The position numbers and the translations under genes were made by a program. Positions 15,509-63,815 of a DNA stretch of 64,000 bases are shown here, piece after piece; the stretch's first letter is position 1; each line of letters starts with the position of its first letter. The notes under the pieces were generated by a model. The model made no database searches. It had not been told where the DNA came from and saw only the letters and a program-made list of their open reading frames with translations. The stretch is from the sequence record NC_070936.1; one strand, written 5' to 3'.

Positions 15509-15540
15509 AATTACTCCATATTCTTTAGCGACTATTATAT

Positions 15541-46507: not shown

Positions 46508-46558
46508 CATAAAACCCCTACCCCTCCTTTCGGAGTGGGTAGGGGATAATAACTTATG
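46508..46558. repeat. repeated intergenic hairpin, copy E
   Basis: cataaaacccctacccctcctttcggagtgggtaggggataataacttatg at a convergent junction; GAAA loop on the minus strand. Confidence 0.8.
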
Positions 46559-46567
46559 TTATTTTTT

Positions 46568-59451: not shown

Positions 59452-60917
59452 TACCGGTATTGCTCCATAGTTAAAGTTCTTAGTACGATATACAACATCA
59501 AAGAGGTTCTGAGTGAAGTGATCTTGATATCAGTTTTGATACCTGTCATGGCTTTCACCAACTCATCACCATTTTTTCTCAGTTTAAATAACAGGGCATT
59601 CGTAGACTTACTTGAAGTATACGCACCACGAATCTTAAAGAACACATTCTTAAGATCATTATGGCGAATAGAGTTAGTCGCTAAATACTCAAATAAGTGA
59701 GTGGTGACATCGTCAACAAACTCACGATATTGTTCCCCTTTAGGATGAGAGTATTGAGATGGGAAATCACGAATGATCATTTCCAACTTATCTTCATCGG
59801 TGCGTGGGATTGCTTTAGCTGCATAAGTTGCAAGTTCCTGTTTAAAGAAACTGTTCTTATCCACCAACACAGTTCCGATATAGTTCTTATACCGGTTAAC
59901 TTGTTTCTGAACATCTTTAATGTTCAGTTCGCCATCTAGTACAGCAAGACCTGAGTCTGTTTCTACTAGATCAACTGAGTCTTTGATTTCGTACAGAACC
60001 TTAGTGTAGTCATTGATAACACCTTTAAGGCGTGATTCCATATCGTTGACCATATACACTATTTTCTTATCATTATCCATCTTAGCAAAGGCATCAAAGT
60101 GAATACCTGTACGAGGATCGATAACGAACTCACCACGAGCACGGAAGAGATCAGTCCATGAACCATAGCGCTTAATATCAAACTTCAAGGAGAGCTTGTT
60201 ATAGGCTGTTACAGCAACACTCGGTTTCACCAGATAACCGAAGTAGTGGTTCATGATCGATGTCATAATGCGGTAGTGGAACAACATTACTAAATTGATC
60301 AAAGTGTCTTCTTTCAGATTACGAGGTAAACTTGAATTATAGACACGGTTCATCAGATAAACAATAGACAGGTTAAAAGGTTCAGAAGAAACTTTAAAGT
60401 CTTTGTTAATCCATTTGGTTTTAATTAGTTCGTCACGTAACCTTACTTCATCAACATCGATGATATCACGGAAGAAGGTAACACGGTCTGACGTTTTGAA
60501 CAAGATACGGTGAGTGCCTAAATAAGGTGACCCAAAGAACTCTGTATGATCATTGTCTTTGGTAGCAAAACCATAAACAAATCTTTTCAGTGTTCTTGCC
60601 CAACGTTCATTAATAACCAGATCATCTACCAAGCCATCAAAGATATCTTTAACAGCATCATCACGATTATAGTTAAAGTTAGGTTGTAGTGCTTCAAATC
60701 CAGCCATGTATTCTGGATTATTCAGATAGGACTCAAGCCCACCAAACTGATTTAGAGCTACTTCAGGACCAAACAAGGTGAATGGTTGGTCTCGTTGTTC
60801 TAAACCCGCTAGTAGCTCTCTCAGCTCGTTATCTGATAGTGAATGTTCCATCATGTCTTCTTCTGACTGAGGAACGTAACTTTGCCTTACCGCATAGGCT
60901 GTATTAGAGAGATTCAT
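59451..60917 (-). CDS. conserved jumbo phage protein, probably a processed head protein
   Basis: 488 aa; acidic N-terminal region with GLE|S and GFE|A sites. Confidence 0.6.
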   Translation of the reverse strand: MNLSNTAYAVRQSYVPQSEEDMMEHSLSDNELRELLAGLEQRDQPFTLFGPEVALNQFGGLESYLNNPEYMAGFEALQPNFNYNRDDAVKDIFDGLVDDLVINERWARTLKRFVYGFATKDNDHTEFFGSPYLGTHRILFKTSDRVTFFRDIIDVDEVRLRDELIKTKWINKDFKVSSEPFNLSIVYLMNRVYNSSLPRNLKEDTLINLVMLFHYRIMTSIMNHYFGYLVKPSVAVTAYNKLSLKFDIKRYGSWTDLFRARGEFVIDPRTGIHFDAFAKMDNDKKIVYMVNDMESRLKGVINDYTKVLYEIKDSVDLVETDSGLAVLDGELNIKDVQKQVNRYKNYIGTVLVDKNSFFKQELATYAAKAIPRTDEDKLEMIIRDFPSQYSHPKGEQYREFVDDVTTHLFEYLATNSIRHNDLKNVFFKIRGAYTSSKSTNALLFKLRKNGDELVKAMTGIKTDIKITSLRTSLMLYIVLRTLTMEQYR

Positions 60918-61762
60918 TAACGTTTCCTTGGAACTGTCATCTTAATAGCATCAGACTTACCTTTCGGATCAGCGTATGCGAGATATTTCTTAATCTCATT
61001 ATTATAGAGATCTTTGAACTCTCTGTGTGCGTCTGCATAACCCTGGATGTCATCTTGAACATCCTCAACAGTAACACCGAAACGAGATACTGCTTCTTGC
61101 ATACCACGACGACAAGTTTTGTAGATATAAGCCTTTACACCTAACTCAACGAGTTCAGCAAACTTATCATACATTCTTGGTGGGATTACAGAGAAGTGTT
61201 CATCATAGGACAAGATGACTTTAGCAATCATGTTAAACATAGCCGAACCAGCATCACGGATAATAAATGAGTTATTACCTGTCATAGTGAAACTGGTGAA
61301 AGAACGTTGCACCTGTCCATCATCTAAACCATTAATTAAACGGTTAAGGCTGTTGTTCATCATACCAGAACCGCAAGCAGCATAGTTATTAAAGTTATAA
61401 CCATTATTGATAGCTCTGTTGATGTTACCTGGATAAACTTCGAGTACAGATAGGATACGACGACCCCCTGTCATAAAGTCAGGTACGTTTACAGCTATGA
61501 TACCGCCTGAAAGGTTTTCAATATGAGCCGCACTAAGATCAATGATCTCTGTTGTCCCACCTGCTACGTTTAACAGGGGACCGACCATCTTCATGATAAC
61601 CTTTTCACGGATACCTTGCTCAACAGTAAACTCGTCATTCACTGGAGACCAAATGCTACCATAACCGTTGTTTGGGTTATGAAACGCTAGTTTCAATAAA
61701 TATTCAGATATGTCAGTAGGTCCATTAATAACGTACTCTACTGAAAAGTCAACTGGATTCAC
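60917..61762 (-). CDS. conserved jumbo phage (putative virion) protein
   Basis: 281 aa; GTG start after AGGAGG. Confidence 0.65.
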   Translation of the reverse strand: MNPVDFSVEYVINGPTDISEYLLKLAFHNPNNGYGSIWSPVNDEFTVEQGIREKVIMKMVGPLLNVAGGTTEIIDLSAAHIENLSGGIIAVNVPDFMTGGRRILSVLEVYPGNINRAINNGYNFNNYAACGSGMMNNSLNRLINGLDDGQVQRSFTSFTMTGNNSFIIRDAGSAMFNMIAKVILSYDEHFSVIPPRMYDKFAELVELGVKAYIYKTCRRGMQEAVSRFGVTVEDVQDDIQGYADAHREFKDLYNNEIKKYLAYADPKGKSDAIKMTVPRKR

Positions 61763-61882
61763 GTTTGAACCCTCCTAATCACTATTTCGAAATAGACCTT
61801 TATAAAAGGCATTGATCTCACTATTCAACCATCCTAGGTTCATAATAGAGAGAAGACGTCATATGATTTAAAACTAAACAAA

Positions 61883-61927
61883 CATAAACCCCTACCCCTT
61901 CCTTTCGGAGGGAGTAGGGATTAAATG
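61883..61927. repeat. repeated intergenic hairpin, copy G, ending the minus-strand RNA locus
   Basis: cataaacccctaccccttcctttcggagggagtagggattaaatg; GAAA loop on the minus strand. Confidence 0.8.
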
Positions 61928-61929
61928 CT

Positions 61930-62867
61930 TGGCTACATGGACACTCGAAAGGATAATCAATAATGTCAGGGTTGCAAATCCCGTCTCATTACAATTACCC
62001 AGACGGCTGTCTACGGTTGATGTCAACAACTTCCCCTTGGCATAGGGGCGGACCGTTTGCACTTGGCTTGGTACGCTATAATGCCATATAGTTACCTTCC
62101 AATTTCAGCGCTGTTGTCTCACCCTTGAACATCGGGTGGTCGCTCACGGTTAGGGCACGACTGTTCTATGACGGTTCCACCAGTGCTGGAGACACTTAAA
62201 TGGATACCCGTTTCGTCTAATTATTTATTGTCGCCAGACTCGTCAGATAGTACGACATACCCTCACCAAAGGGATTAGGTTGGTCCTCTGATATCGCATG
62301 AGTAACTATGTTACTCTCATAGGCTCTTTGAACATCAATGTTCAACCTTAAGTTATGCTTTCGTTCAGAAGGACCGATGGGATGTGTTCCCGCATCATCA
62401 ACTCTCAAGCTCATCACAGTTTCTGCATATATAGCTAGGGTTTGTTCGACGCCAGAACACAAAGGGGTACAGCGTTCCCAACTTTTGATAGATATTGTTT
62501 TTTATGACCGCCCAGGATGGAGTTCGGGTTCTACCATCATCGATAACCCAATAGTCACGTATCGGGAGTGCATTCAGCTTATGCTACTGGACATTCTATC
62601 AAACGCGCTGCTATGTCGCCGAGGTTTACCAGGGCAACACCCACCAGAGGCTACTTACTATAGCGGACTACCGCCGCCGTTCACACTCTGGGTTTTTAAC
62701 TCGGCCTACATTGCCGAGTACTGCCTCCGTAATTTGTCTGCCCAGTGGGGCCGAACTCTACGGAGGTCTTACATCCCAATACCGTTGACTGGCAAACCCC
62801 TTCCAACCCCGGATCAACCGGCTCATTGGACCAGACTTACACTTCCCAACTTAACTGGGTTACTACA
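61930..62867 (-). ncRNA. candidate giant structured noncoding RNA (~930 nt)
   Basis: No credible ORF, visibly higher GC than the coding DNA, dense nested helices found by hand; runs from the tRNA CCA end to the terminator hairpin. Confidence 0.7.
62152..62263 (-). ncRNA. type I hammerhead ribozyme; predicted cleavage between 62170 and 62169 (GUC|A)
   Basis: CUAU-CUGACGA-[GUCUGG/UUAGAC stem II]-GAAA-[CGG/CCG stem III]-UC-AUAG: all core nucleotides match consensus; loop II CGACA can pair with upstream UGUCG. Confidence 0.85.
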
Positions 62868-62944
62868 TGGTGGCCCTGACAGGACTTGAACCTGTGACCA
62901 GGCGATTATGAGTCACTTGCTCTAACCAGCTGAGCTACAGGACC
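62868..62944 (-). tRNA. tRNA with CAT anticodon, most likely tRNA-Ile2 (lysidine type)
   Basis: 77-nt cloverleaf with encoded CCA; C4-G69, C5-G68 and GA-CTCATAA-TC resemble bacterial Ile2 rather than Met. Confidence 0.85.
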
Positions 62945-62952
62945 ATTGCTTG

Positions 62953-63192
62953 TTATGCTTCTACTGCTTTCAGATGACGGTCAAGATCTTCGTAACCACC
63001 AACATACTGATCGTCAACTACGATCTGCGGAACAGTACGAACTGGACGACCGACGATTTCACCCAATTTGGCGCCATCAATACCAGCTTCTACGATATTG
63101 ATATATTCAACTTCAGCACCTTTGGAATCAGCCAGTGCTTTGGCGCGATCACACCAAGGGCAATTCGGTTTGCCGTAGATTACAACTTTCAT
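62953..63192 (-). CDS. grxA: glutaredoxin
   Basis: CPWC active site, TVPQI, GGY. Confidence 0.9.
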   Translation of the reverse strand: MKVVIYGKPNCPWCDRAKALADSKGAEVEYINIVEAGIDGAKLGEIVGRPVRTVPQIVVDDQYVGGYEDLDRHLKAVEA

Positions 63193-63200
63193 TTATTTTC

Positions 63201-63329
63201 CTAACTGATTGTAATATGAATAAAACTGAATATCCAAATGAGGAATTCAATAACTCCCCATCCGATAACCCCACAGATGAGACCAGCTACTATCAAGGCC
63301 CCTGTCCAGGGCCCACTAGAATAAAACAT
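63201..63329 (-). CDS. small hydrophobic membrane peptide (42 aa, missed by the ORF track)
   Basis: AAGGGA RBS; MFYSSGPWTGALIVAGLICGVIGWGVIEFLIWIFSFIHITIS. Confidence 0.6.
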   Translation of the reverse strand: MFYSSGPWTGALIVAGLICGVIGWGVIEFLIWIFSFIHITIS

Positions 63330-63344
63330 GTGTATCCCTTAAAG

Positions 63345-63421
63345 TGGTCCGCTCTGCTGGGCTCGAACCAGCGACCGATTGCTTAGAAGGCAATTGCTCT
63401 ATCCTACTGAGCTAAGAGCGG
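63345..63421 (-). tRNA. tRNA-Arg(TCT)
   Basis: 77-nt cloverleaf; anticodon arm ATTGC-CT-TCT-AA-GCAAT; encoded CCA. Confidence 0.92.
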
Positions 63422-63429
63422 TGAATAGC

Positions 63430-63516
63430 TATCGGGAGTAAGATTCGAACCTACATAGTCTTACGGACGTATCCGCCTTCGAATTCCCTCACTAAGTTTA
63501 AATAGACTATCCCGAA
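63430..63516 (-). ncRNA. tRNA-like element B (acceptor and T arm intact, no anticodon arm)
   Basis: TCGGGA/TCCCGA acceptor; GTAGG-TTCGAAT-CTTAC T arm; internal TAGTCT/AGACTA helix; no CCA. Confidence 0.5.
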
Positions 63517-63533
63517 AAGTGGCACTTATGATA

Positions 63534-63638
63534 GGTCTCGAGGTCAGGACTCTAACCTGACTACTGCGATGATGTCCAGTGGTAGAAACTAATCATCCAC
63601 CATCACATCACTGCGATGTCTTCAACGACATCCTCGAA
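63534..63638 (-). ncRNA. tRNA-like element A (105 nt, elongated anticodon-position arm)
   Basis: TTCGAGG/CCTCGAG acceptor plus A-C-C; TCAGG-TTAGAGT-CCTGA T-like arm; GTC/GAC D-like arm; long TGGTGGA/TCTACCA arm. Confidence 0.55.
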
Positions 63639-63644
63639 GTTGGA

Positions 63645-63738
63645 ATTACACACCGAGTAACCGATAGGTGGGAAGTGGATCCCAGGTATGCGTTTTAGGC
63701 CCTGGCCTGTTGTACCCCGGTTGCACTCAGCATGTAAT
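63645..63738 (-). ncRNA. 94-nt hairpin RNA between tRNA-Asn and tRNA-like element A
   Basis: 14-bp closing helix ATTACATGCTGAGT/ACTCGGTGTGTAAT, then AACCG/CGGTT and inner CCAGG/CCTGG. Confidence 0.5.
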
Positions 63739-63741
63739 AGT

Positions 63742-63815
63742 TGGCTGGGGTAGTTGGGATTGAACCAACGTCCAGGGATTAACAGTCCCCCGCTAAACCA
63801 CTCAGCTATACCCCA
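63742..63815 (-). tRNA. tRNA-Asn(GTT)
   Basis: 74-nt cloverleaf; GGGGA-CT-GTT-AA-TCCCT; discriminator G; encoded CCA. Confidence 0.88.

Follow-up and report, generated by a model that had tools for sequence, protein, structure and literature searches.

A stretch of 64,000 nucleotides from sequence record NC_070936.1 (the window, of 64 kb) was identified by blastn as part of Klebsiella phage N1M2 (MN642089; 100% identity). Sequence comparison indicates that its minus strand at 61885-62867 is probably the gene for an undescribed family of large structured noncoding RNAs (ncRNAs), in which two independent modules are joined by a predicted type I hammerhead ribozyme, and that this family belongs to jumbo phages resembling Pseudomonas phage OBP. 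The locus comprises a 5' module, the hammerhead, a 3' module and a terminator, and it is best read as encoding a precursor that would process itself into two stable structured RNAs. With a genome of 253 kb, N1M2 is a jumbo phage with OBP as its nearest described relative, the proteins of the two sharing 21-88% identity (PMC7058600), and OBP is among the phiKZ-like phages that encode chimallin (PMC10299810). An earlier note, made from the letters of this DNA, had proposed a giant ornate ncRNA at 61930-62867, fused to the 3' end of a tRNA. That the region holds a large, ornate and undescribed ncRNA is borne out by covariation over 11-12 phages, by the absence of a match in Rfam 15 and by the absence of a description in the literature. 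Of the proposed extent the 5' end stands and the 3' end does not: the real boundary lies about 40 nt further on, at about 61885, where a conserved terminator hairpin is followed by a U-tract.

The element was found in 12 distinct sequences from OBP-like jumbo phages and viral contigs, which represent about five lineages. The comparison with related jumbo phages by BLAST, as suggested in the earlier note, yielded conserved syntenic homologues: blastn found full-length copies with 72-90% identity in Yubaba (a Serratia phage) and Sureiya, and partial matches in Shewanella phage SXP01, Pantoea phage Survivor, Edwardsiella phage pEt-SU, Kosakonia phage Kc263 and OBP. Searches with nhmmer (the N1M2 locus itself matching at full length with E = 1e-246) and with a custom covariance model added Erwinia phage AH04 and four viral contigs from IMG/VR, L009, L010, L011 (identical to L015) and L014. 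Further loci were collected from IMG/VR, metagenomes and GenBank phages with the DUF7484 protein, encoded next to the RNA, as an anchor. Every homologue fills one unannotated gap that has glutaredoxin or tRNA genes on one side and the DUF7484 gene on the other. N1M2 overall shows scant DNA-level homology to other phage genomes; the gap holding the ncRNA is nonetheless 72-90% identical at the nucleotide level. The element was not found in distant phages with a 40-47% identical DUF7484 homologue (among them EL and many soil metagenome contigs), and the hammerhead covariance model detected no hammerhead in the distant syntenic loci L021-L038, in the Aeromonas phages D6, ZPAH34, PS1 and pAEv1810, or in Pseudomonas phage EL. 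A similarity search of E. coli genomes returned nothing similar, and an exact 19-mer from the central domain of the RNA matched only pEt-SU itself in a scan of IMG/VR.

The consensus structure was obtained by running RNAalifold on two MAFFT alignments, followed by curation, which resulted in 36 helices with 182 pairs as counted on an alignment of 11 sequences (A4). In this structure 84.1% of the cells are paired, compared to 37-45% when the 3' partners are slid by 1-3 columns. Compensatory changes on both sides were observed at 99 of the 182 pairs (27-41 in the slid controls and 59 +/- 4.7 in shuffled alignments), and the covariation score was 0.339 as opposed to 0.08-0.12 after sliding. None of the 500 shuffles equalled the observed value on any of these measures. 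Since the frequent G-U pairs fit the minus strand only, the minus strand is the RNA strand. The high foldability and the G+C richness remarked upon in the earlier note were both upheld by the numbers: the minimum free energy of the 988-nt RNA is -339.7 kcal/mol, compared to -300.5 +/- 8.5 kcal/mol for dinucleotide shuffles (z = -4.63), and the G+C content is 0.43-0.53 in the RNA locus versus 0.36-0.42 in the flanking genes.

The 5' module begins with a domain at 62784-62850, in which helix P1 (GUUG/CAAC) closes P2 (GUAAGUC/GGUUUGC), P3 (UCCAA/UUGGA) and the hairpin P4; its helices 1-3 show compensatory changes, for example AUGUCA/UGACAU in Kc263. Downstream, at 62699-62766, an invariant UGUAAGACC precedes the hairpins P5 (CCUCCGUA/UACGGAGG) and P6 (ACUCGGC/GCCGAGU), for which changes on both sides were found at 6 of 8 and 6 of 7 pairs, respectively (helices 4-5). 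At 62644-62691, P7 (CCAGAG/CUCUGG) encloses P8 (GGCGGC/GUCCGCU), again with covariation, and the junctions UGAAC and GUAAGUAG are conserved. The central domain (62465-62642, helices 9-18) is built from P9a (GGGU/ACCC), P10, P9b (GCAGCG/CGCUGU), P11 (GAUAGA/UCUAUC) and P12 (GUCCAG/CUGGGC), together with the hairpins P13 (loop AAGCUGA), P14 and P15 (loop UAGAACCCGAACU). It is followed by a variable linker (62376-62464), which is weakly conserved between lineages in the alignments, and by a domain at 62260-62375 that is closed by P17 (GGUCCUUCUGA/UCAGAGGACC) and contains the invariant internal loop GAACGAAAG / CGAUAUC, helices P18-P20 and, at its end, the hairpin P21. P17 (helix 19) is 91.7% paired with compensatory changes at 7 of 11 pairs, and helices 20-23 also support this domain. 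The covariation-supported hairpin P13 exposes in its loop (about 62580-62574) an invariant, self-complementary AGCU, which is the sole hint of a possible self-association of the RNA.

The hand-drawn helices of the earlier note can be compared with this structure, nine of them being confirmed and three not. Covariation backs CTCCGTA/TACGGAG, ACTCGGC/GCCGAGT, CCAGAG/CTCTGG, GTGTTGCC/GGCGACAT and GGTCC.TCTGA/TCAGAGGACC in the 5' module, as well as CACCC/GGGTG and CCCCT/AGGGG further downstream. Of a helix given as 9 bp long, the core GATAGA/TCTATC is supported by covariation. Of a possible H-type pseudoknot, the GATGG/CCATC arm covaries and is retained; the GGGTT/AACCC arm is lost, its GGG belonging to a covarying hairpin CCCGAU/AUUGGG. 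The pairing GTTGA/TCAAC is replaced by that of CAAC with GUUG near the 5' end. A proposed CCGTCT/AGACGG helix is broken already in Yubaba, and another nested set of pairs covaries instead.

The putative type I hammerhead ribozyme occupies 62166-62257 on the minus strand, where 62257-62166 reads 5'-UGUCGU-A-CUAU-CUGACGA-GUCU-(17-nt loop)-AGAC-GAA-ACGG-(34 nt)-CCGU-C/AUAG, the slash marking the predicted cut. Stem I is formed by CUAU (62250-62247) and AUAG (62169-62166), and the core by CUGACGA (62246-62240) and GAA (62214-62212). Stem II (62239-62236 with 62218-62215) carries the 17-nt loop, and stem III (62211-62208 with 62174-62171) is extended by two further helices and a conserved cap loop UCUCCAG. 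A pseudoknot pairs UGUCGU (62257-62252) with GCGACA (62234-62229) in the loop of stem II. In the hammerhead register the self-cleavage site, after the GUC triplet and before an A, is predicted between C17 (62170) and the A at 62169. Three helices thus surround the core, and stem I is open, holding both the 5' and the 3' end, which is the type I layout. Positions C3-A9, G12-A14, G10.1-C11.1, A15.1-U16.1 (here A 62211 paired with U 62171) and C17 are invariant in the 11 aligned members; the only exception is N7 (CUGA followed by C, U or A and then GA), a position at which hammerhead ribozymes tolerate variation. The same CUGA(C/U/A)GA and GAA core is present in AH04. Over the hammerhead block 87.9% of the cells are paired, compared to 28-49% after sliding, with compensatory changes at 14 of 27 pairs. 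All four pairs of stem I have changed on both sides (CUAU/AUAG, CACC/GGUG, ACAU/AUGU, CAG/CUG), the fourth pair of stem II covaries next to the invariant G10.1-C11.1, and in stem III the invariant ACGG/CCGU is flanked by covarying extensions. The pseudoknot is 92.4% paired, with compensatory changes at 3 of its 6 pairs (CAUCGU/ACGAUG, GUUCGU/GCGAAC, CGUCGA/UCGACG). A covariance model built from the alignment scored 82-106 bits in all members and 19-30 bits in unrelated plain type I hammerheads. Apart from family members, a pattern scan for the hammerhead with its context returned only unrelated plain hammerheads, namely L045 from IMG/VR and three from bacterial genomes.

The pseudoknotted type I hammerheads described by Perreault et al. 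in 2011 (PMC3088659) share with the N1M2 element the identical core CUGANGA, the GAAA and the GUC triplet, three helices around the core with stem I left open, stems I and II fixed by a pseudoknot of 6 bp, and a location between phage genes. A pseudoknot between stem I and stem II is a well-established hammerhead feature, needed for fast cleavage, and hammerheads in phage intergenic regions have been reported, for example in PaP3/Bcep176 (PMC3088659). In contrast to such standalone ribozymes, the one in N1M2 is embedded in a structured RNA of about 1 kb, and it also differs from them in its stem I of 3-4 bp, its 17-nt stem II loop and its three-tier stem III with the UCUCCAG loop. The N1M2 element has every sequence and structure feature of a type I hammerhead except a sufficient Rfam score, and its activity is a prediction.

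The 3' module (61937-62165) contains the helices P22, P23, the hairpin P24, P25a (CCCCU/AGGGG) and P27. The loop of P22 (62161-62139) engages in a pseudoknot, in which ACCGU (62150-62146) pairs with ACGGU (62056-62052) about 90 nt downstream. At its centre this pseudoknot has a C-G pair in N1M2, Kc263 and OBP; the AH04-like group has U-A there, and the Aeromonas type described below has A-U. In addition, the loop of P24 (UGGCAU, 62086-62081) kisses that of P25a (AUGCCA, 62043-62038). Four of these six pairs are compensatory, the loops reading AGGCAU/AUGCCU in OBP, GGCAAA/UUUGCC in the AH04 group and GGGCAA/UUGCCC in Kc263. The module ends in P27, a multi-tier helix at 62014-61937. A covarying pseudoknot together with a kissing loop is a hallmark of a compact functional RNA fold, and both modules have compact, pseudoknotted, tertiary-looking folds with invariant loops. 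Other tertiary pairings that were scanned (CGAUA with UGUUG, and AGUGU with ACGYU) are U/G-rich and compete with better-supported helices, and were left unproven. The structure that the earlier note had seen in this part as a 3' domain is real; it forms an independent module, which has a pseudoknot and a kissing loop to itself.

The locus is bounded at 61882-61919 by a hairpin that resembles an intrinsic terminator (61919-61890, CCCUACUCCCUCC-GAAA-GGAAGGGGUAGGG, followed by GUUUAUGUUU), as seen in the alignments and the fold; it is kept in all family members. With nhmmer, more copies of this type of hairpin (CCCUAC...GUAGGG) were detected at about 1912-1956 and 46511-46561 of the window, and such terminator sequences seem to recur as a family in N1M2.

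The predicted cut would split the RNA into a 5' piece of about 700 nt (590-760 nt across the members) and a 3' piece of about 280 nt (270-350 nt). This agrees with the internal hammerhead and the pieces of about 700 and 240 nt that had been predicted earlier (the smaller one here being about 240-280 nt); the core is invariant and the stems covary. The two pieces do not always occur together. SXP01, Survivor and pEt-SU are without the 3' module, and the predicted cut would remove from their RNAs only about 50 nt bearing the terminator. In L009 and L010 the alignments show the central domain of the 5' module to be missing. The Aeromonas phages pAEv1810 (L050, 525-1330) and PS1 (L051, 1633-2490) and the metagenome contigs L016-L020 have about 0.9 kb of noncoding DNA at the syntenic position, 75-95% identical among themselves, which shares only the 3' module with N1M2. 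Its 3' third is homologous to that module, P22, P25a and the pseudoknot showing covariation; the 5' part, of about 550 nt, is unrelated and no hammerhead was detectable in these regions, which probably represent a sister ncRNA family. The absence of the 3' module from three phages and its presence without a hammerhead in the Aeromonas phages indicate that the two modules are independent. In the Aeromonas RNA islands, HNH endonuclease genes were observed: that of pAEv1810 (L050, 1387-2439) separates the ncRNA from the virion gene, and that of PS1 (L051, 424-927) lies between tRNA-Arg and tRNA-Met. These insertions suggest mobile-element traffic in the region.

The upstream side of the locus is less uniform, the neighbour of the RNA being a tRNA, glutaredoxin or an open reading frame (ORF) depending on the phage. 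The fusion to the 3' end of a tRNA described in the earlier note is correct for N1M2, Yubaba and Sureiya, where the RNA directly abuts tRNA-Met, and does not extend to the other lineages. In OBP an ORF separates the tRNA from the RNA, and in AH04-like contigs a promoter-like TATATTAT box lies directly upstream of the RNA instead. This box resembles the published core of the OBP/N1M2/phiKZ early promoters, which hints at early expression.

These observations suggest the following course of events. The RNA would be transcribed from the minus strand, as is the tRNA island, up to the conserved terminator hairpin. In N1M2 transcription would read through from tRNA-Met, and processing of the tRNA 3' end would free the 5' end of the RNA, whereas in AH04-like phages transcription may start from the TATATTAT box. 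The hammerhead would then fold with the help of the 6-bp pseudoknot between the 5' flank of stem I and the loop of stem II, and cut after GUC between 62170 and 62169; its structure comes from comparative analysis and its catalysis is deduced from established hammerhead chemistry. The 5' product of about 700 nt would retain the ribozyme core and carry a 2',3'-cyclic phosphate end, and the 3' product of about 280 nt a 5'-OH end. As the cut would remove only the terminator tail of about 50 nt in the phages that are devoid of the 3' module, the ribozyme may serve as a device that both forms 3' ends and separates modules. During infection each module may then be a stable, structured RNA that works in trans, serving a partner (protein or RNA) as scaffold or decoy or else assembling into a particle by itself; this function is proposed with low confidence, by analogy with GOLLD and ROOL.

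We considered whether the locus might simply encode a protein or represent a decayed gene. A plus-strand ORF of 183 aa (62338-62889) overlaps tRNA-Met and the ncRNA, and GenBank annotates on this opposite strand a coding sequence of 513 nt, N1M2_252, for a hypothetical protein. This ORF has no Pfam match, its frame is lost in Yubaba (90% identical) and it is preserved in no other homologue. Within the N1M2_252 frame the substitutions are distributed 14:14:14 over the codon positions and the indels are of 1-2 nt, and conservation tracks base pairing rather than reading frames. More generally, ORFs of at least 50 aa vary in position and strand across the 12 homologues and none is conserved, in line with the earlier statement that the region is without a credible ORF. 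N1M2_252 is almost certainly a spurious annotation, and we regard the coding explanation as having a negligible chance of being right.

The context of the locus does invite comparison with known giant RNAs. GOLLD and ROOL are phage RNAs found near tRNA islands, and GOLLD env-38 lies downstream of a Met-tRNA and consists of one universally conserved and one less conserved region (PMC12286853). With these RNAs the N1M2 locus shares its phage origin, a size of 0.7-1.1 kb, the tRNA island, the position downstream of tRNA-Met and its modular conservation (PMC12286853), so that a very divergent member of a known family (GOLLD, ROOL, RNase P, tmRNA, group I/II intron, 6S or Y-RNA-like) has to be weighed. 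Against this, cmscan with all 4227 Rfam 15 models returned only tRNAs for the whole window at the gathering score, and only tRNAs and noise for the 2.3 kb around the locus (E <= 10), its 171-nt core (E <= 10) and 11 homologous loci (E <= 0.1). This search, which the earlier note had named as a check, identified no known family: the models of GOLLD, ROOL, OLE, raiA, RNase P, tmRNA, 6S, group I/II introns and Y-RNA-like RNAs went unmatched in N1M2 (E <= 10) and in the 11 loci (E <= 0.1). Weak matches to YrlA (18-30 bits versus a gathering score of 69) lie over neighbouring tRNA genes, outside the large RNA. As for RNase P, a motif-like AGUCCG sits within P8, a local hairpin that covaries, and a motif-like AGAACCCG within the hairpin loop of P15, so that the two do not make up a P4-like helix. 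Membership in a known family is therefore, in our judgement, very unlikely.

Like GOLLD, the new RNA is encoded by phages or prophages, measures at least 0.8 kb, is ornate with multiple pseudoknots, lies in a tRNA island and has a conserved and a variable part (PMC12286853). Unlike GOLLD, it has no similarity to that family in sequence or structure profile, it occurs in jumbo phages of Gammaproteobacteria, and a predicted self-cleaving ribozyme separates its two parts. The location near tRNA genes and the size of at least 0.8 kb are thus as in GOLLD, and the GOLLD covariance model, with its conserved 3' region, does not recognize it. Similarly, it resembles ROOL (rumen-originating, ornate, large) in its large size, its association with phages, its many pseudoknots and the tRNA genes nearby, and differs from it in the lack of a profile match, its other secondary structure, its hammerhead and its other phage lineage. 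The HDV (hepatitis delta virus)-like theta ribozymes (PMC10879173) are also small self-cleaving ribozymes from phage tRNA regions with a proposed role in RNA-end processing; the N1M2 ribozyme differs in being of the hammerhead class, in lying about 700 nt from the tRNA and in processing, as predicted, a giant ncRNA rather than a tRNA trailer. With the family models of GOLLD and ROOL unmatched, we filed the RNA as a new family of giant ornate phage ncRNA. The kind of RNA is already known, and the predicted internal ribozyme between two modules is the new architectural feature.

Two further explanations accept the structured RNA and differ as to what it does. The RNA could be a structured leader or trailer that acts in cis on neighbouring mRNAs, with the hammerhead serving ordinary processing of a polycistronic mRNA. 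Plain type I hammerheads with the same core do occur between genes of unrelated phages, such as L045 and PaP3/Bcep176 (PMC3088659), and the RNA without exception keeps its place upstream of the DUF7484 virion gene. Yet about 900 nt of covarying structure with pseudoknots goes far beyond the needs of a processing site, and a conserved terminator stands between the RNA and the downstream gene. Moreover, an opposite-strand ORF lies between the RNA and the virion gene in L009, L010 and L014, the HNH endonuclease gene is inserted there in pAEv1810, and the upstream neighbour differs between phages, all of which makes a role in cis improbable. We judge about equally low the chances of a regulated, allosteric ribozyme, in which the 5' domain would sense a ligand, a protein or a folding state, gate the cleavage and so control whether the 3' module is released or how stable it is. 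In favour of this, the 5' domain is directly followed by the 5' strand of the pseudoknot on which the hammerhead depends, RNAalifold shows competing pairings near the core (for example GACG/CGUC), the two exclusive partners of the P9 region both covary in SXP01, and such pseudoknots lend themselves to engineered allosteric control (PMC3088659). On the other hand, three phages keep the 5' domain and the hammerhead with only a terminator tail downstream, and a sensor of 600 nt would be unprecedented.

Several points weigh against the reading of the locus as a hammerhead-joined, two-module RNA. The 11-12 sequences amount to about five lineages, and their kinship inflates the significance derived from shuffling; the slid control preserves this relatedness and is the fairer of the two, and the observed values still clearly exceed it. 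The helices P6, P21, P23 and IIIb are just 50-68% paired in columns, owing to alignment slippage, and the P9 region has two mutually exclusive partners (both covarying in SXP01). P25b (AACGG/UUGUU), one of the helices tried, is probably wrong and superseded by the P22-loop pseudoknot. The Rfam hammerhead models stay below threshold for the 171-nt core, the best being Hammerhead_3, which reaches 14.1 bits (E = 1.9) where the gathering score is 48.5, and the type I model gives no match. We attribute the low score to the 17-nt loop of stem II and the 34-nt insert of stem III; the hammerhead assignment comes from a manual register combined with covariation. A simple terminator scanner gave no score for the conserved 3' hairpin, and neither a sigma-70 scan nor the published N1M2/OBP early-promoter consensus placed a site immediately 5' of the RNA in the window. 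Finally, the reading as a whole is a comparative one, in which transcript and cleavage are predicted and the role as a trans-acting scaffold or part of a particle is an analogy.

Large ornate RNAs of bacteria and phages are rare, with just a handful of known classes (OLE, GOLLD, ROOL, HEARO and raiA). Each of these classes opened new biology, the latest case being RNA-only nanocages. The RNA proposed here would be the first of its kind in chimallin-encoding jumbo phages of Gammaproteobacteria, and we know of no earlier giant ncRNA that matures by means of its own hammerhead into two separately conserved modules. It is conceivable, though doubtful, that the modules are new RNA machines of nucleus-forming jumbo phages, be it particles of RNA alone or of RNA and protein that assemble themselves and form a third, unrelated class (maybe with the DUF7484 protein as partner) or, for the 5' module, a new large ribozyme. 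If the modules formed a particle or a ribozyme, the built-in hammerhead would constitute an obligatory maturation step, and in the case of a new ribozyme it would leave the 5' module with a reactive 2',3'-cyclic phosphate end and the catalytic core of the hammerhead. We are not aware of a described giant RNA with such an obligatory internal-hammerhead architecture. The defined, predicted cleavage site offers a natural handle, a point mutation should block maturation, and the culturable laboratory hosts of several of these phages allow direct tests of function (among them Pseudomonas fluorescens with OBP, Klebsiella aerogenes with N1M2 and Serratia with Yubaba). The database annotation of N1M2_252 as a gene can be corrected. 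A literature search found no paper in which these phages are associated with a large ncRNA or with a hammerhead.

On the minus strand of the window the genes are arranged in the order tRNA-Asn (63742-63815), tRNA-Arg (63345-63421), glutaredoxin (62953-63192), tRNA-Met, the large RNA and the DUF7484 gene. The tRNA-Met (anticodon CAU, 62868-62944), whose CCA end abuts the large RNA, was identified with ARAGORN and scored 62.6 bits with the Rfam tRNA model. The DUF7484 gene (60917-61762), downstream of the RNA, encodes a virion protein of 281 aa (phrog_3179), which is unusually conserved among these phages (72-99% identity). Its annotation in N1M2 covers 678 nt; all homologues measure 846-849 nt and align from the GTG at 61762, which indicates that the annotated start in N1M2 is probably too far downstream. 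Between tRNA-Arg and glutaredoxin, an unannotated ORF on the minus strand (63201-63329) encodes 42 aa of hydrophobic character (MFYSSGPWTGALIVAGLICGVIGWGVIEFLIWIFSFIHITIS), and small genes are annotated at the same position in Yubaba (129 nt) and pEt-SU (126 nt). Elsewhere in the window, the N1M2/OBP early-promoter consensus TTTCARRYAKATATTATYWAAGTGWA has four plus-strand matches, at 15540, 38143, 39829 and 42736 (2-3 mismatches, with 0 expected by chance), none of them near the RNA island. The unannotated 320 nt between tRNA-Asn and tRNA-Arg (63422-63741, minus strand) are 80-93% identical at the nucleotide level in pEt-SU, SXP01, Survivor and several viral contigs. The 3' part of this stretch (63430-63516) is tRNA-like, with an acceptor stem and a canonical T arm (GUAGG-UUCGAAU-CUUAC) and with a long non-canonical arm in place of the D and anticodon arms. 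It scores 20.7 bits with the Rfam tRNA model, which is below threshold, and its copy in SXP01 28.3 bits; other relatives have a tRNA-Ser at that position. This stretch may represent a second set of ncRNAs or a degenerate tRNA.

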